IMG/VR virus record: IMGVR_UViG_3300025030_000041
Coordinates: 62,001-126,000 of that record
Length of the DNA stretch: 64,000 nt
Reading direction: 5' to 3' (one strand)
The notes beneath the pieces were generated by a model. The model saw nothing but the letters and a program-made list of their open reading frames with translations. It was not told the DNA's origin and did no database searches. Both the position numbers and the translations under genes were made by a program. Within the stretch, counting starts at the first letter, position 1, and the number at the start of each line of letters is the position of its first letter. Shown in pieces: positions 511 to 48,526 of this stretch.

Positions 511-873
511 TATTTTAATGCTTATACGTATACCAATAGTTAAATTCAAATGATTATAGAACTAATAATTTTCTTTTTAAAAGTTTGGTCTATTTTATGG
601 ACTATACTTTTAGTTTTAATAATATATTCTAGTGCTGTGTTAAACTTAAAAAGACTAGAATTTAACCTTAATTTGAAAACCTGTGCGGAATTATCGCTGT
701 ATATTACTTCAATATACACATGGTTTTTATAAAAAAGATAAAAATACCAACTATTGATTATAAATAGCAAGTTGCAACGGAAACTTAATGGTGTCAAAAA
801 TGTCATTTCAGAGTATTATCATAGATATTTTCTTTACTACGTTATATATAGGGGTGATTTAAAACTATAAAAA

Positions 874-1116
874 ATGATAACAGAAAAAGAATACTTAAAA
901 GCAAAAATGATTGTTGAAGCATATGAATGTGAGCAATTGAATAAACCTGCTAGTATAAGCCATATGAAGTGCTGCGACAACCAAGATATAGAAATATTTT
1001 ATAAAAACACCAGTAATAAGGATGGGAGTGGAAGAATGGGTGTTACTCATAAGATATTTAAATGCAAGAATTGTGTTATGCAATCGGCTTTTATTTGTCA
1101 AATGTTTAATAATTAA
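874..1116 (+). CDS. hypothetical cassette-type protein (Cys pairs)
   Basis: ORF; N-terminus MITEKEYLKAK nearly identical to the 13345 ORF. Confidence 0.6.
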   Translation: MITEKEYLKAKMIVEAYECEQLNKPASISHMKCCDNQDIEIFYKNTSNKDGSGRMGVTHKIFKCKNCVMQSAFICQMFNN

Positions 1117-1141
1117 ATACTTAAAAAATAAAAACAGAATT

Positions 1142-1429
1142 ATGTTAGAAAACGAAAACTTGAATGAACCACAAAAAACGCAATTGAATATAAGTGAGGT
1201 TAGCCACAATTGTATTTGTTGCGGAAAAGAAATAAAGAAACTTGATGGACTGCCAAAAGATAAGGATTGGGAAGGTATGTGGAATGGTGGAATAGTTGAA
1301 AAGATAAGTGCTGGGTATGGCAGTTTACTTGATGGAGATATGTATGTTTTGGCTATATGCGATGACTGTGTAAAGTTGAAACAGCTAAAATACGTTGGTA
1401 ACTATATGTTCCCAGACAATTGTGACTAA
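1142..1429 (+). CDS. hypothetical cassette protein (CxxC pairs)
   Basis: Likely start ATG 1142 inside ORF 1022..1429; stop TAA is part of a TAAC site. Confidence 0.65.
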   Translation: MLENENLNEPQKTQLNISEVSHNCICCGKEIKKLDGLPKDKDWEGMWNGGIVEKISAGYGSLLDGDMYVLAICDDCVKLKQLKYVGNYMFPDNCD

Positions 1430-1571
1430 CTGATGACACTAACAGTCAGGTGGGGATTAAATGCACCGTACTTTCACTTGACGATAAGCTTCATTAGACA
1501 CAAGATAGCTTCAATGTGACACAAGCCCCCACTTGCTGTTATTGTATGTTATGGAGCGTTTATTGCCATCA
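1199..1571 (+). mobile_element. solo integron-like cassette array A (degraded)
   Basis: GTTAGCCACAATTGT 1199 / ACAATTGTGACTAAC ending 1430; hairpin TAAC1427-N5-arm...arm-N2-GTTA1548. Confidence 0.7.
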
Positions 1572-4570: not shown

Positions 4571-4714
4571 AATTAGTTGAAGATTATGACCGTTTATCGT
4601 TTAGTATATTAATTATCAATTAATTATATTTAATTGATATATTTAGTTCAAAAATAAAGTACCTAAAAAATTTAATATATCAAAAATATTTCTTATTTTT
4701 GTATTAAATATAAC
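4571..4714 (+). repeat. promoter cassette copy 1
   Basis: ttatcaattaattatattt...tttagttcaaaaataaagtac...ttcttATTTTTGtattaaatataac; matches the other copies. Confidence 0.85.
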
Positions 4715-4776
4715 ATGGGCATAAAAGAAATGCCGAAATTAGAAGTACAAATTATCAATTTAAAACAAAAGTAAAT

Positions 4777-5043
4777 ATGAAAAACAAAACATCAATTTTA
4801 GTAGGAGCTCGGCATTTCTTTTATGCCTTATTAGTAGCTGTTATTTTTTGCGGTTGTGGAAACGGTGAAAATTCAGTGAATGGAGAAATAGAATATAGAA
4901 CAATTGTTGTAGATAGCTGTGAGTATATTGTAAAGTATAATGGCTATCAAAGAGGGTATATGTTTTCTCACAAGGGAAATTGTAAATACTGCTACAAACG
5001 TACCCCCATTTTGGTTAGTTGCGTGAAAATATTACAAAATTAA
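4777..5043 (+). CDS. putative lipoprotein (cassette)
   Basis: Hydrophobic stretch followed by FCGC lipobox-like motif; starts inside a hairpin loop. Confidence 0.6.
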   Translation: MKNKTSILVGARHFFYALLVAVIFCGCGNGENSVNGEIEYRTIVVDSCEYIVKYNGYQRGYMFSHKGNCKYCYKRTPILVSCVKILQN

Positions 5044-5192
5044 ATTGAAACATGGATGATAAATTGGATTAAAAACTTATTTAAAAGCAGGGGAAAAACA
5101 ATTAACTAAACATGTTGTTATACACAGTATTTTGTTGGTGGGATTTGACAAATTAAAAATAAATTAGCATATTTACAAAAAAAATAAAAATT

Positions 5193-5504
5193 ATGAAAGA
5201 ATTATTTGAAAAACAATTAAACGGAACACAACCATTAACAAAAGATGTTTTAGAAAAATTACAAGTTAAAACATATTTTAATGGTGAAGAAAAACAAATT
5301 GGTGAAGTTGTATTAATGGCGATGTTAATGGGTGAAGTAATTGAAAAGGAAGGTGAATATCCAAAAGTACCATTAAAATTAATAACATTAAACGAAAGCC
5401 ATTTTAATTTATTTGAATATGATGAAAGATTTAATAGAGGTAATAAATTACCAACAATTAAATTGAAACCTTTAGTTGTGGTGGGTAAAAAATATTGCGT
5501 ATAA
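5193..5504 (+). CDS. hypothetical cassette protein
   Basis: ORF ending in TAA of TAAC. Confidence 0.65.
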   Translation: MKELFEKQLNGTQPLTKDVLEKLQVKTYFNGEEKQIGEVVLMAMLMGEVIEKEGEYPKVPLKLITLNESHFNLFEYDERFNRGNKLPTIKLKPLVVVGKKYCV

Positions 5505-5564
5505 CGTCCACAGGTATATATAGTTGCGTAAATAACATATAAAATTAATTAAAAGCGATAAAGT

Positions 5565-5798
5565 ATGAAAACAGATAAAAGTAAATTAGAAGAACAAAAG
5601 CAGCAATTGGATATACATGTTGTTAGCGGTAGTTTAACTCATATTCCTTTGTTTCAATATAATGTTGCTGTTGAATCACACGGGAATACATTAGAACTAT
5701 TGCGAATTATACAAAACGATAAAAAGGAATTAAAAGAAGAGTTAGAAGCAACATATAAAGAAATTGATAGGTTAAAGGCTAAACTAAATTACTGCTAA
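5565..5798 (+). CDS. hypothetical cassette protein, coiled coil
   Basis: QLDIHVVSGS is the translated recombination-site arm. Confidence 0.7.
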   Translation: MKTDKSKLEEQKQQLDIHVVSGSLTHIPLFQYNVAVESHGNTLELLRIIQNDKKELKEELEATYKEIDRLKAKLNYC

Positions 5799-5801
5799 TG
5801 G

Positions 5802-6065
5802 ATGAGTATAAATTTAGTAAAAATAATACAAATGAAGAATAAAGATAAACTTTGGAATTTTGTTTATGAACAAGAACCAAGACTAATGGGAGAACCATTT
5901 GGTAGATTTAACGTTAAAGTAGAAAAAGATTTTTTTATTATAGAATGTGAATTACTTACAAACTTGGAAAATCCATTTATAAATACAGAATTGAAAAAGT
6001 GTAAGGTTGATCAAAAATCTTTTACTAATTGGAAGAACAAACAAAATTCTATTATTTTTTATTGA
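5802..6065 (+). CDS. hypothetical protein encoded inside a hairpin unit
   Basis: ORF lies between and overlaps arms agtataaatttagtaaaa / ttttattgaatttatact; start may be the later Met. Confidence 0.65.
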   Translation: MSINLVKIIQMKNKDKLWNFVYEQEPRLMGEPFGRFNVKVEKDFFIIECELLTNLENPFINTELKKCKVDQKSFTNWKNKQNSIIFY

Positions 6066-6281
6066 ATTTATACTTTGTTATGTTTAACGAAGTATAGTTG
6101 TGAGAAGCGAACAATTAAACATAACGGTTGGGTGTATATGTAATGTGAGATTTGAAACACTAAACTTGAATTAACCACAAATGATGATTAGAAGTAGGAT
6201 TGTTGAATATACCACTGAACCTCACATTACATATACACCTTGTTATGTGTAGTACGGTGTTAAACTTAAATTTTAAAACTT

Positions 6282-6578
6282 ATGGATACAATAAAAATTA
6301 AATTAGAAAGTGGAAATGAATATAAATTACCAGACATTTCATCAGAAAAGTTTGATGAATATGTTTGGAAAAGTGGTAGTAATGACGTTGAATATGAGAA
6401 ATATAAACGTGAAAACGGAATGATGGAATTAACTGACTTTAATTCTCAAACGACTAGTGAAATCACATTAGTGGTAGAACAATCTTGGAGAGGTAGAGTT
6501 TTAAAATTTAAGTGTGTTTATGATTTTGATAACGATGAAAACTTTGATGAAAAGGAATATTTCGGAGAACATGAGTAG
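6282..6578 (+). CDS. hypothetical acidic cassette protein
   Basis: ORF inside GTTATGTGTAGTAC...GTATTACACATAA body. Confidence 0.7.
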   Translation: MDTIKIKLESGNEYKLPDISSEKFDEYVWKSGSNDVEYEKYKRENGMMELTDFNSQTTSEITLVVEQSWRGRVLKFKCVYDFDNDENFDEKEYFGEHE

Positions 6579-6587
6579 TATTACACA

Positions 6588-6697
6588 TAAATATTATATA
6601 TATATATATACATGTATGTTTAAACTATAATAAAATCAATAGTATGAACGAAAAAATTATAAAGATTTGTAAACAAAAACTTATATATTTAACGTAA
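6588..6697 (+). pseudogene. attI-like terminal site plus putative truncated integrase start (MNEKIIKICKQKLIYLT)
   Basis: Near-identical inverted copy at 46900-47002; same layout as the site upstream of the intact integrase. Confidence 0.55.
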
Positions 6698-10815: not shown

Positions 10816-12519
10816 ATGGCAATAGATTTAAACTTACTTAAAGATCATAATACTAGACAAGATTATATTAATACTTTAACTAAAGACGAACTTAAAGCAT
10901 TAATTAATAAACTCAAACTGCAAGATAGTGCATTTAAGATTATATTAAATAGCTATTATGGTTCATCAGGTCAAAATTCCTTCGCATTTTTCAATTTAGA
11001 CATAGCGGCGTCAATAACTTTGCAAGGTCAAGATATTATTAAGTATACGGATAAGGTAATAGAACATTATTTTATTAATGAGTGGCATCTTGATAAAGAG
11101 CTTCATAAAAAATTAAGTATAGATCATTTAAAAATTAATCCTATAAAAATAACAAAAGGGCCACCTATAATATATGTTGACACGGATAGCGTCAACGAAA
11201 ATTCAATAATTTATGTAAAAAATATAGGAAAAATTAAAATTAAAGATTTTTTTAAATTATGTTATAAAATTAATAGTATTATTAAATTAAAAAATGGGAA
11301 TGAGATAATTGGTATTTCTAATTTTAGAATATTAAATTTTAATAATACCTTATATTATGCAAAACCTAAAAAACTGATTAGGCATAAAGTAAAAAAGAAA
11401 AAATGGTTATTGAGGTCTAAGTCTGGAAAATCAATAATATGCACAGAAGATCATTCACTAATTGTATTTCACGATGGAATACAATTAAAAATTAAGCCAT
11501 CTGAAATTAATACAAAAATTGATAAAATTTTAACAATTAACGAATTAGACTTAAATTTTAATTATCAATTTGAAGATATATCTGAATGTAAATGTATAGG
11601 TGAATTCGAAGATGAGTGGGTATATGATATTGAAATGGATGATGCAACTCATACGTTTATTGCTAATGATATTTTAGTTCACAATTCTGGTTATATTAAT
11701 TATGATTATATTATAAAGTCGATAGAGGGGTTTGATACATTAAAAATAAGTCCTATATTATTTGCAGCTGATATAATTAAATATAGGATGAATTCTTATT
11801 TAAATAATAAATTTGAAGAATACGCTAAGTCGTATAATGCAATAAACACCCATGATTTTAAATTAGAGCATATTAGTAATAGTGGTATTTTTATTGCAAA
11901 AAAAAATTATATATTAGATGTTGCATTTGAGGATAGACTATTACCTGAGTCGTATTTATTACCTAAGGGGTTTGATTTAGTAAAAGCGTCTTTACCAAAA
12001 TGGGCACGGGCTAAAGGTACAGAATTAATTAAGATTATTTTAAAGAATGGCGACTCTTTAAATATGGATGAGATATTAAATAAATTATTAGAATATAAAG
12101 AAGAATTTAAAGGGCTACACCCTGATGAGTTTAGTATGAATTTTAATCTACGAACATTTAAAAAATATGTCATTAAAGATGACGATCAATTAGTATTTGC
12201 AAAAGGCGCATCTATCTATCCAAGGTCCGCTGGTTATTATAACCATTTATTATATAAGCAAACTGATAATATACGCAAAAAATATAAAAAGGTAAGAACC
12301 GGAGATAAGGTTAGATTTTATAATTGTATGCCTGATGATACGTATAAGATAGATGCATTTAGTTATTTACCTGGAAAATTTCCAATTGAGTTTGCGCCTC
12401 ACGTAGATTATGATGAGCAATTTAATGTTATTATTTTAAATCCATTGAATAGGGCTCTAGAAGCTATGGATATGCCATTAATAGAAAAAAATGTAATGTA
12501 TTTTAATGATTTGTTTTAA
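10816..12519 (+). CDS. family B DNA polymerase, C-terminal subunit (split gp43-like), intein-containing
   Basis: KIILNSYYG (motif B), YVDTD/S (motif C), KKNY, KG; no exonuclease or motif A. Confidence 0.9.
   Translation: MAIDLNLLKDHNTRQDYINTLTKDELKALINKLKLQDSAFKIILNSYYGSSGQNSFAFFNLDIAASITLQGQDIIKYTDKVIEHYFINEWHLDKELHKKLSIDHLKINPIKITKGPPIIYVDTDSVNENSIIYVKNIGKIKIKDFFKLCYKINSIIKLKNGNEIIGISNFRILNFNNTLYYAKPKKLIRHKVKKKKWLLRSKSGKSIICTEDHSLIVFHDGIQLKIKPSEINTKIDKILTINELDLNFNYQFEDISECKCIGEFEDEWVYDIEMDDATHTFIANDILVHNSGYINYDYIIKSIEGFDTLKISPILFAADIIKYRMNSYLNNKFEEYAKSYNAINTHDFKLEHISNSGIFIAKKNYILDVAFEDRLLPESYLLPKGFDLVKASLPKWARAKGTELIKIILKNGDSLNMDEILNKLLEYKEEFKGLHPDEFSMNFNLRTFKKYVIKDDDQLVFAKGASIYPRSAGYYNHLLYKQTDNIRKKYKKVRTGDKVRFYNCMPDDTYKIDAFSYLPGKFPIEFAPHVDYDEQFNVIILNPLNRALEAMDMPLIEKNVMYFNDLF
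11188..11685 (+). mobile_element. mini-intein (166 aa) in DNA polymerase motif C
   Basis: Starts at S after YVDTD, block B CTEDH, block F VYDIE, ends LVHN followed by S; no endonuclease domain. Confidence 0.9.
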
Positions 12520-13131: not shown

Positions 13132-13169
13132 AACTATTCAGTTTAGCCTCACCCATATATAATACACAA

Positions 13170-13301
13170 AGAGTATTATATTTATCATTTAGTAGATTGA
13201 TTATCAATTAATTATATTTACTTGTTATATTTAGTTCAAAAATAAAGTACTAAAAATGTTAATATATCAAAAACATTTCTTATTTTTGTATTAAATATAA
13301 C
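13170..13301 (+). repeat. promoter cassette copy 2
   Basis: agtagattgattatcaattaattatatttacttGTTAtatttagttcaaaaataa...ttatttttgtattaaataTAAC. Confidence 0.9.
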
Positions 13302-13344
13302 AGTTTGCAGGTTTATTTAGTTGCGACTTTAAAAACGAAAAATT

Positions 13345-13515
13345 ATGATAACAGAAAAACAATACTTAAAAGCGAAAAAGTTAATTGCAGACTACGAAAG
13401 CCAGCAATTGAATAAACATGTTGTTATAAGCAGTAAGCCGACCTCAAAAAAGAAGAAGGTGATTATAGATGCAGATAAATTTTCAAAGATGTGTGATGTT
13501 ATTAAACGGATATAG
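13345..13515 (+). CDS. hypothetical cassette peptide, 56 aa (not in ORF track)
   Basis: MITEKQYLKAKKLIADYESQQLNKHVVISS... Confidence 0.65.
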   Translation: MITEKQYLKAKKLIADYESQQLNKHVVISSKPTSKKKKVIIDADKFSKMCDVIKRI

Positions 13516-13587
13516 GCTTATTGCTGCTAACGTTCATCAGATATATTCAGTTCTGATTTTAATATATAACTAAAATAAATTAATAAG

Positions 13588-13845
13588 ATGAAAGATAGAA
13601 AACATATAAAAACATTTGAAGATAAGACATCAGAATTGAATATATCTGATGTTATAAGTAGTAAAACTAAGGAAGAAATTCTAAAATTGATAAAAAGTTT
13701 AGATGATAGAGGGTATTTTTATATTTTCAATAATAGAGAGGATTTTGTAGAGGGTAGAACAGATTGGGATGATTTAAAAGATACTTGTGAAAACTTTTAT
13801 TATGTTATTGAAAATATAAAAGAATTAATAGAAAGAAATGAGTAG
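13588..13845 (+). CDS. hypothetical cassette protein with KHIKTFED leader
   Basis: ELNISDVISS is the translated site. Confidence 0.7.
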   Translation: MKDRKHIKTFEDKTSELNISDVISSKTKEEILKLIKSLDDRGYFYIFNNREDFVEGRTDWDDLKDTCENFYYVIENIKELIERNE

Positions 13846-13925
13846 TTTTATTACTTATAACGTGCCGCAGCTTGACGCTGTTGGCGATTTGAAACACGAA
13901 TTTTAATTAAACAACAAAAGTAAAT

Positions 13926-14270
13926 ATGGAAACGAAAACTTCAATTAACAACGAAACCGCCAATAGCGTTCAAGGTACTGTTAGGCGTAGGGCGGACATC
14001 AATCAGGAGATTGCCGAAAAATGGGAATTAATCGCTCAAATCAAAACAGAAATAGTTGCCTTGAAAAAAGAGGAACTTCTATTGTGTGATGACCACCAAA
14101 GATTTGAGGAAACGGAAGAAGAAATAACAATTTCAAGGCGACCAAAGAAAACCGAAAAGCGATTAATTGGGCGTATTCATTGGAAGGAAGAATTTAAGGA
14201 TGAAGATACAGAGCAATCTATTTGGATTGAGCGTTCACAGGTTGTTCGCGTCAATGGTGTGTGGCAGTAG
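13926..14270 (+). CDS. hypothetical cassette protein
   Basis: ORF; more GC-rich than the backbone. Confidence 0.75.
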   Translation: METKTSINNETANSVQGTVRRRADINQEIAEKWELIAQIKTEIVALKKEELLLCDDHQRFEETEEEITISRRPKKTEKRLIGRIHWKEEFKDEDTEQSIWIERSQVVRVNGVWQ

Positions 14271-14382
14271 CCTTACGCCTAACGTTTTGCGTATATGTGA
14301 AGTACGCATAGCAGAAACTTGAAATTAAATACAAACCTTAATGGCGTATTTCACATATACGCTGTTAGCAAATCGTAAAATT

Positions 14383-14559
14383 ATGACTAAGAAAGATATT
14401 TTAAAATTAGTAGAAGAAACATTCAGCGAAGAAATTTCAACTTCTTGTGCTGAAACTGTATTAGGACTTGAAAGTTGGATTGATGGTAAAGAAGAATTTA
14501 TGGAAAAGTTAGCAGAGAAGTTGAAATTGTTATTTGATGATAACGACTTATCTAAATAA
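14383..14559 (+). CDS. hypothetical cassette protein
   Basis: Start at 14383 or 14341. Confidence 0.6.
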   Translation: MTKKDILKLVEETFSEEISTSCAETVLGLESWIDGKEEFMEKLAEKLKLLFDDNDLSK

Positions 14560-14571
14560 TTTTATGTTTGC

Positions 14572-14731
14572 TAACGTTCTGTAAATATGATTAGTTGAAG
14601 AGTACTGTCATTTATAATTTAGTAGATTGATTATCAATTAATTATATTTACTTATTATATTTAGTTCAAAAATAAAGTACTAAACGTGTTAATATATCAA
14701 AAATATTTCTTATTTTTGTATTAAATATAAC
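14572..14731 (+). repeat. complete promoter-only cassette (copy 3)
   Basis: TAAC-gttct-GTAAATATGATTAGTTGA...TCAATTAATTATATTTAC-tt-ATTA-body-TAAC; no ORF. Confidence 0.9.
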
Positions 14732-14757
14732 GGCTACAGATAAACTCAGTTTTTATT

Positions 14758-14979
14758 ATGGAAAAGAAAATATATTACGAAAACAATTGGTTAAATCAGC
14801 ACTTAAATAAAGTTGGATTGCTCGATAAAAAATTGAGTTTATCTGATGTTATGTGTTGTGTTTGTGGGTCGGAACTCACAATTCAAGAGAATGAAGAAAA
14901 TCTAACTTATGATGTTAGAGAACGAATATGTGATAAATGTAATAGTGAGTTGAGCGAGGAAAGAAAACATTGCATATAA
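14758..14979 (+). CDS. hypothetical zinc-ribbon cassette protein
   Basis: CCVC...CDKC; stop is part of TAAC. Confidence 0.7.
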   Translation: MEKKIYYENNWLNQHLNKVGLLDKKLSLSDVMCCVCGSELTIQENEENLTYDVRERICDKCNSELSEERKHCI

Positions 14980-14997
14980 CGGCATCCGCTATGAGTA

Positions 14998-15291
14998 GTG
15001 GCGGATTTAGAACTACTCACTTTAAATTTAGCACAAATGACAATAGAAAGCACAGAACATCAAGAAAGCACTAACCCGCCATTACTTATATCGAGTGTTA
15101 GCGGTAGTGTTTTTCGTCCGAAGAATGGACACGAATTACTGCAAGCATTGAAAGAAAATAAACAATGTGAGATAGTAGATACACACGCATTTTTAGCAAC
15201 AAAAGCACTTGAAGACAACCATTGCGGATTTTCATTTTCTTTCAAGCTGTCAAAGTGGAATAAAGGATGGTCAGGTTTCGAGTGGTCTTAA
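14998..15291 (+). CDS. hypothetical cassette protein (integrase-proximal)
   Basis: LLISSVSGS translated site; start may be ATG 15037. Confidence 0.65.
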   Translation: MADLELLTLNLAQMTIESTEHQESTNPPLLISSVSGSVFRPKNGHELLQALKENKQCEIVDTHAFLATKALEDNHCGFSFSFKLSKWNKGWSGFEWS

Positions 15292-15300
15292 CATTACCGC

Positions 15301-15320
15301 TAACTATTATATATATACAA
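15301..15320 (+). other. attI-like terminal recombination site (TAAC-TAT-(TA)5)
   Basis: Last TAAC has no partner hairpin and lies 37 bp before the integrase ATG. Confidence 0.6.
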
Positions 15321-15340
15321 GTACGCTTAATATATTGAAT

Positions 15341-16156
15341 ATGAATACTAAATTTGATTGTATTATCAGAAAATTTGAAAAAACTCTGATAATAAAAAAT
15401 TATTCAACATGTACTATTAATAATTATAAAAGTTGTCTTTATAACTTTTTAATAGAAATAAACAATGATCCATACCATTTAAATTTAGAACAGTTAAACA
15501 ACTATTTATTTAATTTTAATTATTCGTCAGTATCACAGCAAAATCAAATACTTAATTCTTTAAAAATATTCTATTTATTAATTTTAAAAAAATCAATAAA
15601 ACATTTAATTAAAATTAAAAGACCACGAAGAGAAAAGAAATTACCACAAGTAATTTCGCATGATGAAATTGTGCAATCAATTTCCAAAATACAAAACTTA
15701 AAACATAAAGCTATCATATCGCTAGCATATAGTAGTGGATTAAGAGTTTCAGAAATATGTAATCTTAAATTAGAAGACATAGATTCAAAAAGAATGCTAA
15801 TTTTAGTTAAATCAGGAAAAGGAAGAAAAGATAGAGTTGTACCTCTTTCAAATCATATTTTAGGGCTTTTAAGAAAATACTATCTTAAATACAAACCTGA
15901 GTTTTATCTTTTTGAAAGCTATGCTCATGGAGTTAAATATTCTACTTCAAGTTGTAGGCAAATTTGGAATAATTTTAAAATTAATAAAAATTCAACTTTT
16001 CATACATTGAGGCATTCATGCTTTACAAATCTTTTAGAAAATGGAACGGACATACGAATAATTCAAAAAATAGCAGGGCATTCATCAATAAAAACTACAG
16101 AAATTTATACTCACATATCAACTAATATCTTAAATAAGATTAAATTACCAATTTAA
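15341..16156 (+). CDS. tyrosine recombinase / integrase (271 aa)
   Basis: SGLRVSE (R), GKGRKDR (K), HTLRH, GHSSIKTTEIY; N-terminal SAM-like domain; the track start 15209 overlaps a cassette, so 15341 is preferred. Confidence 0.95.
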   Translation: MNTKFDCIIRKFEKTLIIKNYSTCTINNYKSCLYNFLIEINNDPYHLNLEQLNNYLFNFNYSSVSQQNQILNSLKIFYLLILKKSIKHLIKIKRPRREKKLPQVISHDEIVQSISKIQNLKHKAIISLAYSSGLRVSEICNLKLEDIDSKRMLILVKSGKGRKDRVVPLSNHILGLLRKYYLKYKPEFYLFESYAHGVKYSTSSCRQIWNNFKINKNSTFHTLRHSCFTNLLENGTDIRIIQKIAGHSSIKTTEIYTHISTNILNKIKLPI

Positions 16157-18716: not shown

Positions 18717-19340
18717 ATGATAAAACATTTTTCTAGTAAAAATATTCTTTTTATTTTCTTTGCTGTACCCTTCATCTCTAGTATTCTTTCAACTATACAT
18801 TTAATATCATTCGCTGGGTTAGCTAATCCTTTCTTTCTATCTGTATTACTCGCTACTACGTTTGAACTAGGGTCTCTTGTGTCATTTATAGTTGGTAGCG
18901 GCAAAACTCTATTGAAAAAAATTAAAAAGAGTTATGTTATCTTAATGTTCTTAATTCTTTTTATTTTACAAGCCTTTGGTAATGTTTATGCGTCATATGA
19001 TTATATACGCCATAAATTAATGGAAGACCCAACTTGGCTAGATACATTCATGGATATGATGCTAGGTGCATTAGATTTACAAATGAGTAAGTTTATTGTA
19101 TCAATATTAATAGGATTGCCTATACCATTAATATCATTAATTTTATTGAAATCTGGAGTAGACTATATATCCGAAGAAGAGGATGACATATTACCTAAAC
19201 AGGAAAAAATAATAGAACCAGTTATAGTAGTAAAAACTGAAGATACTATACTACCTAATTTTGAAATAAATAAACCAGAAGAAACTATACAAACAATAGA
19301 TGGAAAAAATAATACTATAGGCGAACCCTATATGCAATAA
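18717..19340 (+). CDS. multi-pass membrane protein
   Basis: About 4 hydrophobic helices. Confidence 0.75.
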   Translation: MIKHFSSKNILFIFFAVPFISSILSTIHLISFAGLANPFFLSVLLATTFELGSLVSFIVGSGKTLLKKIKKSYVILMFLILFILQAFGNVYASYDYIRHKLMEDPTWLDTFMDMMLGALDLQMSKFIVSILIGLPIPLISLILLKSGVDYISEEEDDILPKQEKIIEPVIVVKTEDTILPNFEINKPEETIQTIDGKNNTIGEPYMQ

Positions 19341-19341
19341 T

Positions 19342-19845
19342 ATGGCTCAGATAACTAGAATTTGTGCAGATAGTCAAGATACAATTAAAAAACTAATTAT
19401 TCAAAATAATAATTTTGATATTATTTTAAAAGATAAGGTGCTTTTTAGTTTTTTAATGGCTGGATTTGTATATCCAGTTGATTCTTATGAATATATTTCA
19501 GATACCCTTACATATAACCAATCTATAAATCTTTTTGATAATACCAATTTAACTAAACAAGTCAAAGGCATAATTATTAAAGTAAATTATCCTTTACAAG
19601 ATAATAAGCAATATATACCACTTGAAAAACAATACTTGCAAATGGATATATATGATGATAATTTACCCAGTAGTCCGTCTATGTATGTAAGACAAAAAAT
19701 ACATAATTTATATGTTAACTTAATGCCACCAACTACTGATACAATACTATTAAATATAGGCCTAATTAATAGTATCACATTAACTAATATACACCAAGAA
19801 AATTATAATATAGAAGTATCTATATTATTGATAAAACAAAAATAG
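19342..19845 (+). CDS. hypothetical protein
   Basis: ORF. Confidence 0.65.
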   Translation: MAQITRICADSQDTIKKLIIQNNNFDIILKDKVLFSFLMAGFVYPVDSYEYISDTLTYNQSINLFDNTNLTKQVKGIIIKVNYPLQDNKQYIPLEKQYLQMDIYDDNLPSSPSMYVRQKIHNLYVNLMPPTTDTILLNIGLINSITLTNIHQENYNIEVSILLIKQK

Positions 19846-19861
19846 GTGTTATATTTAAATG

Positions 19862-21613
19862 CTATCTTTTCCAAACAAAAATATAGTTACCACTATTATA
19901 ACATTCTTTATAATCCAATCCATGCATTATCTCAAACTCCGTTTTATCAATACTATAATTACTTAATTTATGCTTAACGTAAACTTGTCTATTATACCTC
20001 TTATAATTTTTAGTATAAAAATACCCAGGTCTAGACTCTCCTAAATAATCAAACCCCATATTAATATAAACATTTTCGTCAAATCTAAACGCCCAATCTC
20101 TATTAGAATACGTTAAAACCAAATTAATTTCACTATACTTATTAATAAAATAAGAAAATAACCTATTAGCTGCCCCAATAACATTAGTATTCAACTTATT
20201 ACAAAACCTATACAACTCTAAATCATATTTTTCCTTGTTTTTATTCCCATACCTAATCTTTCCAAATGTCATCAAACTAACTAACTCCTCTCCATAATAC
20301 AAACCTATATTATATTTACTCATACACTTGCCCTGCAAATGATTATCTTCTAAAAATTTATTAGACTCTTTAAACGATACTTCTCGTATCACACACTTCC
20401 TAGAATATATCCTATTAGGAGTTTTATTTAAAAGGTTAAGTATACGTGATTTAATAATATTTTTTCTATATAACCAATCATCTTCCCATATATGAACTAG
20501 ATGGACCTTTTGTTTTATACAATTAACGGTTTTATTTAAATGATAATTTTTATTTTTTAGTATTACATTATTATGTGCATAAAAACTATTATATTCAAAT
20601 GCTAAGTTTAATTCAGGTATATAAATATCTAATTCCTTTGGTGAAATAACAGTTCTATTATTTTGAATAACATTAAAGTCAGTATTATTTTTAATAAATT
20701 CATAAATTTCAGTTTGACAAATACTTGAGCTTAATGGATTACAATTTAAGCATGGAGTTTCTATTTTATATTTTTCTACTCTTTGCTGTAAAAGATTATT
20801 ATTAATAATATATTCAGTATTACATTTATCACATAGTATAGTTATATCTCTATCATAATCTACATTAATAATATTTAAGTTTGGATATTGCGCTAGTATT
20901 CGTTTTCTAGTTTTTTCTAGTTTTTTCTTTTTAATTTCTTCTCTATTTATCTTAAGAGATTCTATTCCAGCTAATCTAACTTCAGGAACTTGAAATGGAT
21001 GAAAATATTTTCCATTAGTTTTTTCTATAAATGTCTTTCTCTTTTTTTCTTTTAGTTTAATACTACTATCAGTTCCTTTTCCATAATTTTTTGAAAAAGT
21101 ATTTGATGCTTTTTCTTTAACCCAACTAATTTGTTTAATATTGTCTACACCATACTTATCTCTAATTGTATCTTTTCTTTTTAAATACGCAGTATTTCCT
21201 TTCGCTAATGGGTTATCCTCTCCTTTTAAATGCTTATGATTTCCAGAAATATGATTCTTAATATACTTTTCTTTCTTTTTAAGTTTAACGTCTAAATCAT
21301 TATTAATACATTTCATACTACAATATACTGAATATCCTAATGACAACCCTCTAAATTTAGGGAAATTAATCTTACAACACTTACATATAGGTACACAGTT
21401 CAATTCATAAATATAATGATAAATCTGTTGTGTAAATGATAGATCTATCAAATCATTTAATTTACTATTCTCTTCTATTAAATTAAATAAATCAGGATTA
21501 TTATTATTTAACTTTTTTCTGACACACTTCCACCCTGATTTATTATCAGTCATAAAATATTCTAATACTTCAGTTTTCATTTTTCCATTCAAATTTATAA
21601 TTTCCACAATCAT
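19862..21613 (-). CDS. putative homing endonuclease (Hef/Vsr-like PD-(D/E)XK) paralog 1
   Basis: KYGVDN repeats, ELDIYIPELNLAFEYN, HIWEDDW, C-terminal NHLQG...ELYRFC domain. Confidence 0.7.
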   Translation of the reverse strand: MIVEIINLNGKMKTEVLEYFMTDNKSGWKCVRKKLNNNNPDLFNLIEENSKLNDLIDLSFTQQIYHYIYELNCVPICKCCKINFPKFRGLSLGYSVYCSMKCINNDLDVKLKKKEKYIKNHISGNHKHLKGEDNPLAKGNTAYLKRKDTIRDKYGVDNIKQISWVKEKASNTFSKNYGKGTDSSIKLKEKKRKTFIEKTNGKYFHPFQVPEVRLAGIESLKINREEIKKKKLEKTRKRILAQYPNLNIINVDYDRDITILCDKCNTEYIINNNLLQQRVEKYKIETPCLNCNPLSSSICQTEIYEFIKNNTDFNVIQNNRTVISPKELDIYIPELNLAFEYNSFYAHNNVILKNKNYHLNKTVNCIKQKVHLVHIWEDDWLYRKNIIKSRILNLLNKTPNRIYSRKCVIREVSFKESNKFLEDNHLQGKCMSKYNIGLYYGEELVSLMTFGKIRYGNKNKEKYDLELYRFCNKLNTNVIGAANRLFSYFINKYSEINLVLTYSNRDWAFRFDENVYINMGFDYLGESRPGYFYTKNYKRYNRQVYVKHKLSNYSIDKTEFEIMHGLDYKECYNSGNYIFVWKR

Positions 21614-27199: not shown

Positions 27200-27721
27200 T
27201 TAAACATAAACTTTTCCTTTTACATCAATTACTTTTCTTACTTCTCTTACTGTAAATTTTTTAGTATTATTCTCAATATTAAAGTATTCTCCTACCGCTG
27301 TAGGAGCTCCTTCAAGACTAGTTAAATAATTATCAGAACAATCAAAATCACCACCTACTATTTTTGGACTTCCTTCTAAACTAGTTAAATTATTATTATA
27401 ATAACAACAACCAAAAAAACCAGTTACTTCTTCTAGGTTTAGCTCTTTCAAATTATTTATTTCTTTTAGTCTAACATTACCAATTATAACTTTAATATTC
27501 TTAAAGTCTTGTATATTATTTTTAGTTATAATAATCGTTTTATCGAAGGGTTTAGCTACGAATATTTGTTCTTTGGTATAACCTTTATTGAGGTAAGGAA
27601 GTAATAAATCATCCCACCGTTCTTTAAGTCGTCTAGGTATAAATATATCTTTAGCACTAAGCTTAGACTTATTAGATTCTTCTTCAGATATAAATTGTTC
27701 AAATAGCTTTATATGCTTCAT
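27200..27721 (-). CDS. LRR-like (LTSLEG) paralog with MKHIKLFEQF leader
   Basis: 22-aa repeats; paralog family. Confidence 0.85.
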   Translation of the reverse strand: MKHIKLFEQFISEEESNKSKLSAKDIFIPRRLKERWDDLLLPYLNKGYTKEQIFVAKPFDKTIIITKNNIQDFKNIKVIIGNVRLKEINNLKELNLEEVTGFFGCCYYNNNLTSLEGSPKIVGGDFDCSDNYLTSLEGAPTAVGEYFNIENNTKKFTVREVRKVIDVKGKVYV

Positions 27722-27724
27722 TAT

Positions 27725-28348
27725 TTAAAATAGCATTTTATAAGTTTCTACAAAATTTATAGTAGAGCTAAATGATGGTTTGATTTTTTGAATTATATTA
27801 GAGTCTGGTTCTAAATCTTTGCCATTAATTCTAAAAGAAGTAGTAGTAGGTTTAGCGTTACTGATTATAGTAATATCTTCTTTTAGATCAGCTTCAAATA
27901 TAAAATCGTCATAATTATACTCAGTAACTATTTTAAGACGTAATTCTAAAGTTGGTAATACTCTTAATATATCACCAATTAATTCCATTTTTGAATATTT
28001 TTCCTTTGGTATGCCTAAGTCATCAAAAAATTCAGTTTCTTCAGTTTTTATTATAAAGTCAAGAGGAATTAACATTAAGTCATTATAATTAATAGTAGGT
28101 TCATTAATTGATAATAAACCTATTTTTGCTCCTTTTATTTCTTTATTAACTCCAGATTTTATATCAAATGTAGAATAATAATATTTCTCTTCAATATGAT
28201 TAATTTTACCTCCTAAAACCTTAAGCTTTTTAATACACGCCGTAGTAGTTGAAAAATTTATTTTAATATCTTCTTCAGAATGCTGCTTAATTTCATTAAT
28301 CTTATAATTATTCTTTATTTTATATTCACAGAAATTATCAAATATCAT
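27725..28348 (-). CDS. hypothetical protein
   Basis: ORF. Confidence 0.7.
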   Translation of the reverse strand: MIFDNFCEYKIKNNYKINEIKQHSEEDIKINFSTTTACIKKLKVLGGKINHIEEKYYYSTFDIKSGVNKEIKGAKIGLLSINEPTINYNDLMLIPLDFIIKTEETEFFDDLGIPKEKYSKMELIGDILRVLPTLELRLKIVTEYNYDDFIFEADLKEDITIISNAKPTTTSFRINGKDLEPDSNIIQKIKPSFSSTINFVETYKMLF

Positions 28349-28365
28349 TTTCGTGTATTTTATTT

Positions 28366-29001
28366 TTAAACATAAACTTTTCCCTTTACATCAACTACTT
28401 TTCTTACTTCTTCTTCTATAAATTTTTTAGTATTATTCTCAATATTAAAATATTCTCCTACCGTGGTAGGAGCTCCTTCAAGACTAGTTAAATTATTATT
28501 AGAACAACTAAAATAGCCGTTTACCGTGGTAGGAGCTCCTTCAAGACTAGTTAACTTATTATTATAACAATAAAAATTTCCACTTACTATAGTAGGAGCC
28601 CCTTTAAGACTAGTTAACTTATTATAAGAACAATCAAAAAATCCACTTACTATAGTAGGAGCCCCTTTAAGACTAGTTAACTTATTATAAGAACAATCAA
28701 AATATCCAACTACTTCTTCTATACCTAATACTCTCAAATCATTTATTCCACTTATTCCAACATTACCTATTATTACTTTAATATTCTTAAAATCTTCTAT
28801 ATTATCTATAGTTATAATAATCGTTTTATCAATTGGTTTAGCAATAAATATTTGTTCTTTGGTATAGCCTTTATTTAGGTAAGGAAGTAACAGGTCATCC
28901 CAACGTTCTTTAAGTCTTCTAGGTATAAATATATCTTTAGTGCTAAGCTTAGGAGTTTCTTCTTCAGATATAAATTGTTCAAACAGTTTTATATGTTTCA
29001 T
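28366..29001 (-). CDS. LRR-like paralog with 4 repeats
   Basis: 66-nt near-identical tandem repeats at about 28450-28710. Confidence 0.85.
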   Translation of the reverse strand: MKHIKLFEQFISEEETPKLSTKDIFIPRRLKERWDDLLLPYLNKGYTKEQIFIAKPIDKTIIITIDNIEDFKNIKVIIGNVGISGINDLRVLGIEEVVGYFDCSYNKLTSLKGAPTIVSGFFDCSYNKLTSLKGAPTIVSGNFYCYNNKLTSLEGAPTTVNGYFSCSNNNLTSLEGAPTTVGEYFNIENNTKKFIEEEVRKVVDVKGKVYV

Positions 29002-29363
29002 TATTCTTCAGTTTTAGGTTCAATTTCAGTAGAAGTTTCTTCTGGTTTAATGTCTTCGCTAGGGGTTTCTAATAATTTTTTTTCTAGGTATTCTTTTTGA
29101 GTTTCATAGAATTGTTTAATAGTCGGCCAAGTTAGTGTTACTTCTTTATATAATTCTTCCATTTTTGGTCTAATACTTTTAATATCTGAATTATCATTTA
29201 ATAATACATCTAGTAGAACTGTACGAAATTTAGTTAAACCATTATATGCAGTATCAAAATCTTTTTCATCTAATGTTAGAGATTCTGGATCTTTTTTAAT
29301 ATCAGTAGCCTCATTAAGAATTCCATTTTTAAATTCTTCGTAAAGTTTAAATTTTTTATTCAT
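29001..29363 (-). CDS. hypothetical protein (KLYEEF leader)
   Basis: ORF. Confidence 0.7.
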   Translation of the reverse strand: MNKKFKLYEEFKNGILNEATDIKKDPESLTLDEKDFDTAYNGLTKFRTVLLDVLLNDNSDIKSIRPKMEELYKEVTLTWPTIKQFYETQKEYLEKKLLETPSEDIKPEETSTEIEPKTEE

Positions 29364-29392
29364 GATAAAGTATTTTATTTTTATTTATTTAT

Positions 29393-29944
29393 TTAATCTA
29401 TTGCAACTTTTAAATTAAAATCAAAATAATTAAATGTTGCATCAAATGTATTAAAAGTTGGAGTATTACTGCTATATGATAATTTTAGGCTTGACATTCC
29501 TTTTAATATAACTTTATTATATTCAATTTGGCTAATCGCTTTACCTTCACTATTTAACATTAATACTATAAATGGTGGAAAAACATCAAGCTCAGTATTA
29601 TTAAAATCTAAATAATTTAATGCATTTTCAAGCATAATGAAATAATTTAAAAAAGCGTCCGTTAATTTAAAAGTTAATGTAAATTCTCTAGTAAATAAGT
29701 CTTGAATAGGTTTACTATTTTTCATTTCACGAGTCTTTCCTAATAGTAAAGTTTGAGAAGATGTTGTCATTGACCATCCTGGAAAATCAATTTGTTGTAC
29801 TGTACTTGACATAAAATCAGATATTGTATCATAAGGTAATATTAAACTCTTATAATAATCTTTATATTTATTTTCAATTTCAGAATTAAAAAATTCTTTT
29901 GGAAATTGAAATACAAAACTACTTTGTCTATTATTTAATATCAT
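29393..29944 (-). CDS. putative tail tube-like / virion protein
   Basis: QQIDFPGWS...FTLTFKL...LSYSS...FDATFNY pattern; structural context. Confidence 0.5.
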   Translation of the reverse strand: MILNNRQSSFVFQFPKEFFNSEIENKYKDYYKSLILPYDTISDFMSSTVQQIDFPGWSMTTSSQTLLLGKTREMKNSKPIQDLFTREFTLTFKLTDAFLNYFIMLENALNYLDFNNTELDVFPPFIVLMLNSEGKAISQIEYNKVILKGMSSLKLSYSSNTPTFNTFDATFNYFDFNLKVAID

Positions 29945-29947
29945 TTA

Positions 29948-30484
29948 TTAAAATGTTAAAATTGAAACTATATTATTTTTAATAGTTTGTGTTAAATACG
30001 ATTTATCAATAGACGAAATTGAATCTAATAATGGCTGTTTATATCCGTCTTTATATAATTCAATATACGATTTTACAGTATTTAATAAGTCGAATGCATT
30101 AGATTGTCCAACTGTATTTAATACATATATTTTTGCCTCATCAATAACATTCTCTCTACGAATAATACCTTCATTTATAGATTCTTGAGGAGAATAATAT
30201 TTTATATTAGTTTTAGTATATCCAATATTTCCATTTTCTAAATACCAATCTGAAACTAAAGTTCTATATAAAACTAATCCTAATGAATTTCTAGTATAAA
30301 TTCTAGTTTCTCTAACTATTAAATCTGAATAATCAATCCCATTATAATATTTATAATATTCAATGATAGATAATTCCCCTTTTATAATAGTCCGTTTTTT
30401 ATGAAACCCCATAATATCATAATCGAATAACTCCGGCGAATCATACTTACTATGTATTTTAAATTTAGAACTAATTACAGTCAT
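29948..30484 (-). CDS. hypothetical protein
   Basis: ORF. Confidence 0.7.
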   Translation of the reverse strand: MTVISSKFKIHSKYDSPELFDYDIMGFHKKRTIIKGELSIIEYYKYYNGIDYSDLIVRETRIYTRNSLGLVLYRTLVSDWYLENGNIGYTKTNIKYYSPQESINEGIIRRENVIDEAKIYVLNTVGQSNAFDLLNTVKSYIELYKDGYKQPLLDSISSIDKSYLTQTIKNNIVSILTF

Positions 30485-30500
30485 TTACTTATATATTTTT

Positions 30501-31010
30501 TTAAATAATAACTTCATCTTTTACATCAACTATTTCTCTAACTTCTTCTTCTGTAAATTCTTTGTCATTACCACTAATCCAAAAATCATTTTTAACTATC
30601 ATAGGTGCTCCATTTAAATTAGTTAAATAATTATCAGAACAATCAAAATCACCACCTACTATTTTTGGGCTTCCTTCTAAACTAGTTAGCTTATTTAAAT
30701 AACATTTGAAATTTCCGAATACTTCTTCTATATTTAGCTCTCTTAAATCACTTATTCCTTTTATTCTAACATTACCTATTATAACTTTAATACTTTTAAA
30801 GTCTCCTATATTATCTTTAGTTATAAGCATATCTTTATTAAAAGGTTTAGCAATGAATATTTGTTCTTTAGTATAGCCTTTATTGAGGTAAGGAAGTAAT
30901 AAGTCATCCCACCTTTCTTTTAGTCTTCTAGGTATAAATATATCTTTAGCTCTAATTTTAGGTTTATCTTCCTCAGATATAAACTGTTCAAATAGTTTAA
31001 TAGGTTGCAT
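30501..31010 (-). CDS. LRR-like paralog
   Basis: MQPIKLFEQF...DIFIPRRLKERWDD; LTSLEG repeats. Confidence 0.85.
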   Translation of the reverse strand: MQPIKLFEQFISEEDKPKIRAKDIFIPRRLKERWDDLLLPYLNKGYTKEQIFIAKPFNKDMLITKDNIGDFKSIKVIIGNVRIKGISDLRELNIEEVFGNFKCYLNKLTSLEGSPKIVGGDFDCSDNYLTNLNGAPMIVKNDFWISGNDKEFTEEEVREIVDVKDEVII

Positions 31011-31011
31011 T

Positions 31012-32691: not shown

Positions 32692-32706
32692 TAATATTAT
32701 TTATTT

Positions 32707-33285: not shown

Positions 33286-33311
33286 TATTTTTATTTATTT
33301 TTATTTAAAAT

Positions 33312-33338
33312 AAAAAAGGCTGATGTAAATCAGCCTTT
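33312..33338 (-). terminator. intrinsic terminator
   Basis: aaaggctgat/atcagccttt hairpin with A run on + strand. Confidence 0.7.
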
Positions 33339-33361
33339 ATATAAACAAAAATAGTTTTTTG

Positions 33362-34016: not shown

Positions 34017-34060
<44 letters not shown>

Positions 34061-48364: not shown

Positions 48365-48526
48365 ATTTTTAATCGTTTAATTATTTCCTTTCCTAAAAAT
48401 GTTTTATTTTTTCTTCTGCTCCGAATGAATTGTAGTGGAAGCTCCTGCTGCTAACAAAGGATATAAGAAAGTAATTTTTTCTTGTCTATTTTTAATGGTA
48501 AAAAATTCCATTCTCATATCCTCATC

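Follow-up and report, generated by a model that had tools for sequence, protein, structure and literature searches.

The window analysed here, a 64,000-nt stretch of IMG/VR record IMGVR_UViG_3300025030_000041 (positions 62,001 to 126,000 of that record), derives from a large T4-like phage and contains an integron-like array of small gene cassettes that ends immediately upstream of a tyrosine recombinase gene. Each cassette runs from the C of one TAAC to the TAA of the next and comprises a 5-6 nt spacer (consensus ggttg), an attC-like hairpin (the A stem, whose loop often holds the start codon of the cassette ORF), a 1-2 nt spacer followed by GTTA, and the ORF body, which is enclosed by a second, cassette-specific stem that includes GTTA/TAAC (the B stem). 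The window additionally harbors two further arrays and a minus-strand element. The individual features are as follows.

780-1560 (+): third, short array remnant with B stem 1199-1214/1415-1430; one ORF (874-1116) has a leader paralogous to cassette 1.
4592-6590 (+): second array with no adjacent integrase, starting with a P element and including, for example, hairpin 6131-6152/6218-6239; partly decayed and ending CACATAA|ATATTATATATA.
13180-13301 (+): truncated ORF-less 'P' cassette at the far end of the main array; palindromic B stem 13224-13245/13280-13301 with wobble G13234·T13291; contains TAtTTTTG, which reads as a Bacteroidota-type -7 promoter box (consensus TAnnTTTG).
13301-13530 (+): cassette 1; A hairpin 13308-13330/13397-13420 (G13320·T13408), ORF 13345-13515, B stem 13423-13439/13515-13531 (G13433·T13521). 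Unitig 13319-13531 is 3-4x deeper than its neighbours and ends at the C of TAAC.
13531-13860 (+): cassette 2; A hairpin 13536-13557/13629-13650 (G13550·T13636), ORF 13588-13845 starting in the hairpin loop, B stem 13651-13669/13843-13861 (G13661·T13851).
13861-14282 (+): cassette 3; A hairpin 13871-13890/13954-13974 (G13880·T13964, extrahelical T13970), ORF 13926-14270, B stem 13980-13993/14270-14283 (G13990·T14273).
14283-14574 (+): cassette 4; A hairpin 14289-14307/14344-14362 (G14302·T14349), ORF 14341-14559, B stem 14364-14384/14556-14575 (bulged T14373, G14375·T14565).
14575-14730 (+): complete ORF-less 'P' (promoter-like) cassette; A hairpin 14581-14598/14634-14651 (G14589·T14643, G14594·T14638), degenerate core ATTA 14652-14655, B stem to 14731 (G14664·T14721).
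14731-14979 (+): cassette 5; A hairpin 14738-14754/14828-14844 (G14749·T14833), ORF 14758-14979 whose stop codon is the TAA of TAAC, GTTA at 14848, weak B stem (G14853·T14975, G14858·T14970).
14980-15303 (+): cassette 6, next to attI; A hairpin 14987-15007/15073-15093 (G14993·T15087, G14998·T15082), ORF 15031-15291, B stem 15097-15111/15290-15304 (G15107·T15294).
15301-15340 (+): attI-like junction TAAC|TATTATATATATACAAG.
15341-16156 (+): tyrosine recombinase, 271 aa.
48456-48640 (-): minus-strand P element with a perfect 24-nt palindrome, followed by an A hairpin whose wobble is G·T on the minus strand.

An Rfam scan returned no match at gathering threshold anywhere in the window. Pfam and PHROGs searches with ten cassette proteins assigned no function, and a DNA search of the array against deposited phage genomes returned a single 103-nt hit, in a 642-kb uncultured phage.

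G·T wobbles in the cassette stems

A first-pass annotation of positions 13528-15304 had proposed that mismatches between the hairpin arms are mostly G·T wobbles on one strand. This observation holds and lies far beyond chance. The six stem examples it gave are all present (G13550·T13636, G13661·T13851, G13990·T14273, G14749·T14833, G14589·T14643 with G14594·T14638, and G15107·T15294), and it had missed others, namely G13880·T13964, G14302·T14349, G14375·T14565, G14664·T14721, G14853·T14975, G14858·T14970, G14993·T15087 and G14998·T15082. A full count over this interval, which had been set beforehand as a test of strand bias, used stems defined by type-blind alignment and yielded 15 G·T, 1 T·G, 2 A·C (both at the frayed loop-side ends of alignments), 3 other mismatches and 2 single-T bulges (T13970 and T14373); 16 against 2 corresponds to p of about 0.001 in a binomial test. 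The annotation's further claims were likewise confirmed: the minus-strand hairpin at 48456-48527 shows A·C on the + strand, that is, G·T on its own strand; the extrahelical T of unit 13858-13983 is T13970; and the asymmetric loop beside the core recurs in 237 related hairpins, with spacers of 5/2 nt in 91 cases, 5/1 in 75 and 6/2 in 24.

To extend the count, we collected stems from related phage arrays. As a chain-finding run with lenient thresholds linked chance stems over kilobases, the thresholds were raised and only stems scoring 10 or more were counted. Across 502 non-redundant stems there were 611 G·T, 66 T·G, 33 A·C and 47 C·A pairs, i.e. 677 against 80 (p about 1e-118). Rather than representing mismatches that happen to be tolerated, as the annotation had implied, the wobbles occupy two nearly invariant positions, with G in the 5′ arm and T in the 3′ arm in an AGT/ATT context. 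Position 11 of the B stem is G·T in 194/201 stems, the 3′ arm base there being T in all 265 stems, and the pair 15 nt before GTTA in the A stem is G·T in 212/225. Outside these recurrent positions there was no G·T excess over A·C (60 vs 51), and a general signal of wobbles being tolerated on this strand is therefore not seen, although many of those mismatches lie at frayed stem ends. Single-T bulges occurred in a minority of stems (82 in the 5′ arms over the 502 stems), often 3 nt 5′ of the invariant G, whereas the constant irregularity is the G·T wobble. Some arrays in the window are decayed and lack the wobble, for example the perfect hairpin 4718-4736/4809-4827.

The arms covary. At variable positions all four Watson-Crick pair types occur, with 95-100% of positions paired as compared to 27-40% when partner arms are shuffled, albeit with figures inflated by ascertainment since stems were found by their complementarity. 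Folding both strands with DNA parameters showed the + strand to be the more stable in 7/7 reconstructed sites of the window (sum -159.8 vs -137.5 kcal/mol) and in 277/281 sites from related loci (mean difference -4.5 kcal/mol).

Cassette boundaries, strand polarity and the recombinase

Homology blocks shared between arrays ran from TAAC to TAAC in 13 cases and from GTTA to GTTA in none. In two of the related loci, designated L049 and L066, L049 2634-3593 matches L066 583-1542 at 99.9%; this segment is the last cassette before attI in one array and internal in the other, and the match breaks exactly at TAAC on both sides. The cassettes are thus discrete mobile units bounded at the core site, and the crossover point TAA|C proposed by the annotation is compatible with these data, the resolution being the 4-nt core. 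An integrase search confirmed 219 relatives in IMG/VR. Of 68 fetched loci with enough upstream sequence, 53 carry an array that ends in TAAC|TATTATATAT (junction TAAC|TAtTATATAT) 27-236 nt (mostly 37-104) before the integrase start. The cassettes, about 370 nt at the median, are almost all of unknown function, and no conserved accessory gene was found next to the integrase across 80 loci. In the public runs, in which this phage is represented by contigs that would not reveal rare excision or circle junctions, the listed joints had short sides (30 nt or less in the two runs that hold the phage) or fell in the multi-copy P element, and none was taken as evidence.

In the phages, 314 of 322 cassette ORFs point towards attI and the integrase, such that reverse-oriented cassettes within phage arrays could not be used to separate selection on RNA from selection on DNA. 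Bacterial relatives (Bacteroidota, Nitrospirae) supplied this test instead. There, the integrase is co-oriented with the cassettes and lies upstream of them, with ORFs on the integrase-sense strand (38 vs 5). However, that strand carries 99 A·C and 7 C·A against 18 G·T plus T·G, and the spacer asymmetry is reversed, while on the non-coding strand the same two positions are G·T in 32/36 and 26/34 cases. The wobbles hence follow the polarity of the site and not the coding strand, which is incidental; the relevant strand is the one that runs 5′ to 3′ from the array towards attI and the integrase. By position this is the integron 'bottom' strand, on which phage cassettes happen to encode their ORFs. 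Coding constraint was also rejected as the cause of the fixed T and G: T15 to C would be synonymous in the window example (TTG to CTG), and the G lies in the translated arm of B stems while in A stems it is the T that lies in the translated arm.

The recombinase is a Xer-like two-domain tyrosine recombinase that carries Phage_integrase and SAM_4 domains and is closest to XerA, with the XerA structures 4a8e and 5hxy as best matches and NF040815 giving the top score. The catalytic residues R135, K160, H221, R224, H247 and Y256 are invariant in 22 homologues. In contrast, the enzyme lacks the IntI-specific additional (I2) domain around patch III that is defined as necessary for attC recombination (PMC9668308): residues 179-204 span what is residues 179-250 in VchIntIA (2a3v), leaving about 45 residues missing, and TIGR02249 scores 170.7, below its 265 cutoff, and in two stretches. 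By its defining domain, therefore, the recombinase is not an integron integrase.

A folded-strand model and its alternatives

The annotation's interpretation, that the substrate is folded single-stranded DNA recombined as in integrons, is partly supported: the pairing is under selection and strand-specific, and the sites are built like attC hairpins next to a tyrosine recombinase, but neither the notion of tolerated wobbles nor that of an integron integrase is supported. We favor, with reasonable confidence, a Xer-type integron variant whose folded single strand carries two built-in G·T marks. In this model, the B stem, the asymmetric internal loop and the A stem would stack into one long hairpin on the strand running towards attI, either in the excised circle or by coaxial stacking of neighbouring hairpins in the array. 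The hairpin would offer two similar half-sites, 5′-A-T*-T-N-Y-N-T-A-T-A-3′, each with its T* paired with G, giving one wobble per half-site as the second pair from its outer end, and with about 6 nt between the half-sites on the 3′ strand. There is no single conserved duplex site of the dif type; rather, an arrangement resembling an 11-6-11 Xer core, with 4-5 extra unpaired bases in the strand carrying TAA|C, is inferred in the folded form only. The element's own recombinase would bind this strand, cleave in TAAC, and exchange it with attI or another cassette site. The strand asymmetry is consistent with only one folded strand, the bottom strand, being the substrate. The wobbles would make only this strand fold well, as the complement has C·A at both places, and probably also serve as a structural mark for strand choice, the job done by extrahelical bases and the I2 domain in classical integrons. 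Precedents exist in that integron attC sites recombine as folded bottom strands with unpaired features setting strand choice (PMC5027507, PMC4792948), and XerCD acts on the folded single strand of CTX phage (discussed in PMC4792948). While our sequence analysis establishes the anatomy, conservation, covariation, cassette boundaries, and the strand asymmetry with its independence from transcription, the use of single-stranded DNA, the exact cleavage point and the role of the wobbles are inferences without direct evidence of single-stranded substrates, excised circles or cleavage, and absence of the I2 domain, which integron integrases use on folded attC, speaks against them.

Among the alternatives, recognition of ordinary duplex TAAC sites appears unlikely but is the strongest. 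The fixed T (TAAC side) versus G (GTTA side) and the ggttg/tt spacers would then distinguish the recombining TAAC sites from inverted GTTA sites and so prevent inversions, with hairpin potential being secondary. In its favor, the enzyme is Xer-like and lacks the IntI insertion, about 18 conserved positions surround TAAC, enough for sequence-specific duplex binding, and there is no strand bias outside the fixed positions. Yet this gives no reason why variable arm positions covary with a partner 40-2000 nt away or why G is kept at about 97% on the GTTA side, which in this view is not a recombination site, and the two half-site-like motifs would adopt the inferred 11-6-11-like arrangement only when folded. 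It is also very unlikely that the wobbles are relics of an unknown cassette-generating process that copies a template hairpin already containing them. A hairpins do form sequence families shared among different ORFs, and how integron cassettes arise is unknown (PMC4889954), but the wobble is kept at 94-97% across integrases only 40-57% identical and across phyla, while flanking stem positions have turned over completely, which argues for purifying selection on the G·T itself.

Selection on mRNA folding, which the annotation had raised, would have G·U pairs serving translation control, stability or processing of cassette transcripts, and would fit the coding-strand location of the phage wobbles and the roughly one third of ORFs that start inside the A loop. 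It is contradicted by the bacterial relatives, where the mRNA-sense strand carries A·C, and rendered very improbable also by stems that are registered to the crossover core and not to start or stop codons, by B stems that span whole ORFs, and by the absence of Rfam matches. Mutational bias, whereby strand-asymmetric C-to-T or A-to-G changes on the non-template strand create G·T in neutral inverted repeats, can draw on the positive GC skew of the + strand but is all but excluded by the confinement of the bias to fixed positions, the 611 to 66 preference for G in the 5′ arm, and the flipped polarity relative to transcription in the bacterial relatives.

More broadly, and about as likely as not, these arrays belong to a widespread lineage of integron-like elements without the I2 domain in Bacteroidota-type bacteria and their large T4-like phages, in which a plain Xer-type recombinase recombines folded single-stranded cassette sites and two nearly invariant wobbles encode strand choice instead of extrahelical bases read by an IntI-specific domain. 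Such a lineage could be an ancestral-like stage or an independent solution to the question of whether attC or the I2 domain came first, and would bear on how attC sites and IntI co-evolved, including the suggested viral link (PMC4792948). As integron recombination is the textbook case of a recombinase reading DNA shape and not sequence, and is thought to depend on the IntI-specific domain and extrahelical bases, a plain Xer-like enzyme using a different structural code would show the strategy to be broader than integrons proper. It would also give virulent phages a dedicated platform for capturing and shuffling accessory genes. The wobble is a simple, mutable signal. Literature searches for a phage or Bacteroidota Xer-type integron, or for wobble pairs in attC, found no relevant paper. 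Integron finders that require the IntI domain would file these arrays as integrase-less clusters or miss them.

With integrons, the arrays share a tyrosine recombinase next to an attI-like site and mostly single-ORF cassettes, and imperfect hairpin sites of the attC type (RYYYAAC...GTTRRRY cores, here TAAC/GTTA) with an unpaired central spacer, variable sequence and conserved structure, as well as boundaries in the core and the orientation of the best-folding strand. Besides the missing I2 domain, they differ in an R stem that extends to 12-20 bp and is cassette-specific, a spacer of 5-6 vs 1-2 nt, and two nearly invariant wobbles where integrons rely on extrahelical bases; parsing of canonical class 1 attC sites for the wobble recovered only one site in one plasmid locus. 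Nor are the phage cassettes promoterless units read away from attI from a common promoter Pc: their ORFs lie on the folding strand, ORF-less promoter-like cassettes are present, and no integrase-side promoter can drive the cassettes because they are transcribed towards it.

In CTX phage integration, a Xer-type recombinase without an I2 domain likewise acts on a hairpin folded from one strand, attP(+), that mimics a dif-like core with an imperfect central region (PMC4792948), but that phage borrows the host XerCD and integrates a whole genome at dif, whereas here the element encodes its own recombinase and, in our model, uses many different hairpins to move cassettes at its own attI. CALINs and attC sites with cassette-like ORFs were reported in virulent phage genomes, including a Polaribacter phage (Qi et al. 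2023, PMC9892861); those were sporadic sites found with canonical attC models and tested with IntI1, without a described phage-encoded dedicated recombinase family, attI or conserved wobble. Finally, pdif modules on Acinetobacter plasmids are small Xer-dependent gene modules bounded by alternating, inversely oriented sites. However, pdif sites are conserved 28-bp duplex sequences used by the host XerCD, while the arms described here vary in sequence and covary with a distant partner, which is the signature of a folded site.

Architecture of the cassette array and the wobble count

The 64-kb window has a G+C content of 25% and derives from a T4-like phage, encoding a Gp23 major capsid protein, a prohead protease, a clamp loader and a gp6-like baseplate protein, together with a sigma factor, a 5'-3' exonuclease and a family-B DNA polymerase fragment (10816-12519) interrupted by an intein (Pfam DNA_pol_B plus Intein_splicing). 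Its nearest deposited relatives, Tenacibaculum jumbo phages and Lak-type megaphages, are distant; a split, intein-containing polymerase is likewise annotated in the Tenacibaculum phages PTm1 and PTm5. Public sequencing runs containing this phage are groundwater metagenomes.

In 13150-15340, two kinds of stem alternate along the + strand. The 'A' stems are attC-like hairpins, consisting of TAAC, a 4-6 nt spacer, a 17-23 bp stem, a loop of 36-83 nt, the return arm, 0-3 nt and then GTTA. The 'B' stems start at that GTTA and pair with the sequence ending in the next TAAC, so that they enclose the body of a small ORF. The array comprises six ORF cassettes, in all of which the ORF starts before the GTTA and reads through it; in five the start codon lies in the A loop, while in the sixth it opens the return arm. 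The remaining parts are as follows:

13180-13301 (+), truncated copy of the ORF-less cassette, at the far end of the array
14575-14730 (+), complete ORF-less cassette
15301-15304 (+), terminal TAAC, followed by TATTATATATATACAAG
15341-16156 (+), tyrosine recombinase gene (271 aa)

At 31.4%, the G+C content of the array (13301-15304) exceeds that of the window as a whole (25.5%), which suggests the cassettes to have been acquired from elsewhere. No function could be assigned to the cassette proteins.

The first-pass annotation had claimed that mismatches between the arms are mostly G·T wobbles on one strand. To test this by a full count, we defined stems by an alignment that scores every mismatch type alike. 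In 13528-15304 this returned 15 G·T, 1 T·G, 2 A·C (both at frayed ends), 3 other mismatches and two single-T bulges. All six pairs that the annotation had listed are present, as are its minus-strand example, the asymmetric loop beside the core and the extrahelical T (T13970). The observation therefore holds. With DNA folding parameters, the + strand is the more stable in all 7 reconstructed sites.

We next searched for related loci. The recombinase has 219 confirmed relatives in IMG/VR at 50-57% identity, many on contigs of 100-360 kb. In 53 of 68 loci with enough upstream sequence, a chain of A and B stems ends 27-236 nt (mostly 37-104) before the integrase start, at a conserved TAAC|TAtTATATAT junction. 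After removal of duplicates, this yielded 237 A stems and 265 B stems, which on the integrase-sense strand carry G·T 611, T·G 66, A·C 33, C·A 47 and 256 other mismatches. The reconstructed site is more stable on that strand in 277 of 281 cases, by 4.5 kcal/mol on average.

Fixed wobble positions, arm covariation and cassette boundaries

The wobbles sit at fixed places. In B stems, position 11 counted from the G of GTTA is G·T in 194 of 201 aligned cases, and the 3' arm base there is T in all 265. In A stems, the pair 15 nt before GTTA is G·T in 212 of 225, with further G·T pairs recurring at 10 and 12 nt before GTTA (58 and 45 cases) and one subfamily having C·A at 6 nt before GTTA. The G is always in the 5' arm, in an AGT/ATT context. 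Recurrent positions hold 572 G·T, 45 T·G, 2 A·C and 27 C·A, while everywhere else the count is 60 against 51, with no bias. The signal is thus not a general tolerance of wobble mismatches, but a built-in feature of the site.

Is pairing itself selected? At variable stem positions all four Watson-Crick pair types occur, and pairing is 95-100%, as compared to 27-40% when partner arms are shuffled among stems. Ascertainment by complementarity inflates this figure, but the stems are long and the sequences very diverse.

To delimit a cassette, we compared homology blocks shared between different arrays. These start at TAAC far more often than at GTTA (122 against 11), and blocks that include an ORF run TAAC to TAAC in 13 cases and GTTA to GTTA in none. 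Two blocks in arrays of related loci, L049 2634-3593 and L066 583-1542, are 99.9% identical; in one array the block is the last cassette before attI and in the other it is internal, and identity breaks exactly at TAAC on both sides. Another pair keeps the upstream A hairpin and loses the downstream one. Hence, a cassette is C-spacer-A hairpin-GTTA-ORF-B 3' arm-TAA, and the crossover lies within TAAC; the TAA|C crossover inferred in the first-pass annotation is compatible, at 4-nt resolution. In the metagenome graph, the unitig covering cassette 1 (the first ORF cassette from the far end) is 3-4 times deeper than its neighbours and ends at the C of TAAC, in line with several contexts for one cassette, albeit as weak evidence. 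Two cassettes in different arrays (874-1116 and 13345-13515) share a conserved N-terminal leader (MITEK[EQ]YLKAK...QLNK) encoded upstream of the GTTA core, followed by unrelated C-terminal parts; in the first, the core has decayed to GTATAAGC.

The ORF-less cassette is a repeated element of about 120 nt, found in the window at:

13180-13301
14575-14730
4592-4713
48525-48640 (-)
60266-60390 (-)
56977-57020 (-)

Its B stem is a near-palindrome around a 34-nt loop, and each arm holds TAtTTTTG, which matches the Bacteroidota -7 promoter consensus TAnnTTTG. It may be a mobile promoter cassette, and depth in the metagenome suggests roughly 8-10 copies.

The recombinase and its bacterial relatives

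The recombinase matches XerA structures best (4a8e, 5hxy), followed by VchIntIA (2a3v) in two pieces. Its residues 179-204 correspond to 179-250 of IntI4, so that about 45 residues are absent, including the IntI-specific domain. The top NCBIfam model is 'site-specific tyrosine recombinase/integron integrase' (XerA_Arch), and the integron-integrase model stays below its cutoff. The catalytic residues are invariant in 22 homologues. By the defining feature quoted in PMC9668308, the enzyme is therefore not an integron integrase. No accessory gene is conserved beside it.

Given that 314 of 322 cassettes in the phage arrays have the ORF on the wobble strand, we turned to bacterial relatives to distinguish selection on RNA from selection on DNA. 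A scan of one genome per species found homologues at 37-50% identity, mostly in Bacteroidota (for example Flavobacterium limicola, Pseudopedobacter and Chitinophaga) and also in Nitrospirae and other MAGs. In 17 arrays from 16 of these loci, most starting about 100 nt downstream of the integrase gene, ORFs are on the integrase-sense strand (38 vs 5). There, the coding strand carries A·C 99 and C·A 7 against G·T + T·G 18, and the spacer asymmetry is reversed (1 vs 5 nt). In contrast, on the non-coding strand the same two positions are G·T in 32/36 and 26/34. The wobble strand therefore follows the polarity of the site and the side on which attI lies, not transcription, and selection on mRNA folding, an alternative raised in the first-pass annotation, is excluded as the general cause. 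By position, the folding strand is the one that runs from the array towards attI and the integrase, like the integron bottom strand; the phages simply encode their cassette ORFs on it.

In the bacterial relatives (L109 8820-8930; L088, L129 and other loci), the attI-like region between integrase and array holds a direct repeat, for example GTCATACATAT twice in Flavobacterium limicola, ahead of ...TATATACAA|GTTA, which is reminiscent of the accessory integrase-binding repeats of attI1. The closest plasmid homologue (L162, Flagellimonas marinaquae plasmid NZ_CP092416.1; 43% identity) is annotated 'xerA: site-specific tyrosine recombinase/integron integrase' and sits beside erm(F) and a Tn3-family transposase, whereas the annotated neighbours downstream (a recombinase-family protein and an AAA ATPase) are not cassette-like. 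Thus, not every member of the family serves an array.

A proposed folded-strand substrate

In the most likely mechanism, in which single-strand use, the cleavage point and the function of the wobbles are all inferred from sequence, the B stem, the 5-6/1-2 nt internal loop and the A stem would form one long hairpin, either in the excised circle or by stacking of neighbouring hairpins in the array. Aligned on the wobble T, the B 3' arm and the A 3' arm share 5'-A-T*-T-N-Y-N-T-A-T-A; in the B arm the last T-A are the T-A of TAAC, and in the A arm they are the nearly invariant T and A at 8 and 7 nt before GTTA. This would give two 11-nt half-sites with about 6 nt between them on the 3' strand and 4-5 extra unpaired bases (ggttg) on the strand that carries TAA|C, a shape resembling a Xer 11-6-11 core that exists only in the folded strand. 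The two wobbles would lie at dyad-related positions, each as the second pair from the outer end of its half-site, and on the complementary strand both become C·A. We propose that they mark and stabilise the correct strand, the job done in integrons by extrahelical bases read by the I2 domain (PMC5027507, PMC4792948). The nearest mechanistic precedent for a Xer enzyme on a folded strand is CTX phage (discussed in PMC4792948). The earlier interpretation of a folded single-stranded substrate is partly supported.

Among the competing explanations, a duplex model, in which the fixed differences distinguish TAAC from inverted GTTA sites, explains the conserved bases, but neither the covariation nor the conserved G on the non-recombining side. 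Selection on mRNA structure is contradicted by the bacterial arrays, and mutational bias fails because the G·T excess is confined to fixed positions. A relic of cassette genesis does not explain 94-97% conservation across deep divergence.

Full-text literature searches found sporadic attC clusters in phages tested with IntI1 (PMC9892861), but nothing on a phage or Bacteroidota Xer-type cassette platform or on wobble pairs in attC sites. We regard the system as integron-like in architecture and probably in mechanism, yet lacking the domain that defines IntI and, on present evidence, using a different structural code.

Runs of TA dinucleotides flank array ends, the attI-like site being TAAC|TATTATATATA, and similar runs elsewhere in the genome could be secondary insertion targets. 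Such runs were noted at:

15305-15320
6596-6612
13150-13165
34026-34056
46966-46996

GC skew and gene orientation switch together near 19-20 kb (19000-20000). Arrays left of the switch are on the + strand and those right of it on the - strand, so that in this window the folding strand is always the G-rich, gene-sense strand. Finally, five paralogous ORFs with 63-nt periodic internal repeats and conserved 5' and 3' ends (27200-33960, minus strand) lie next to a gp6-like baseplate gene and are probably variable tail-fibre or receptor-binding proteins.
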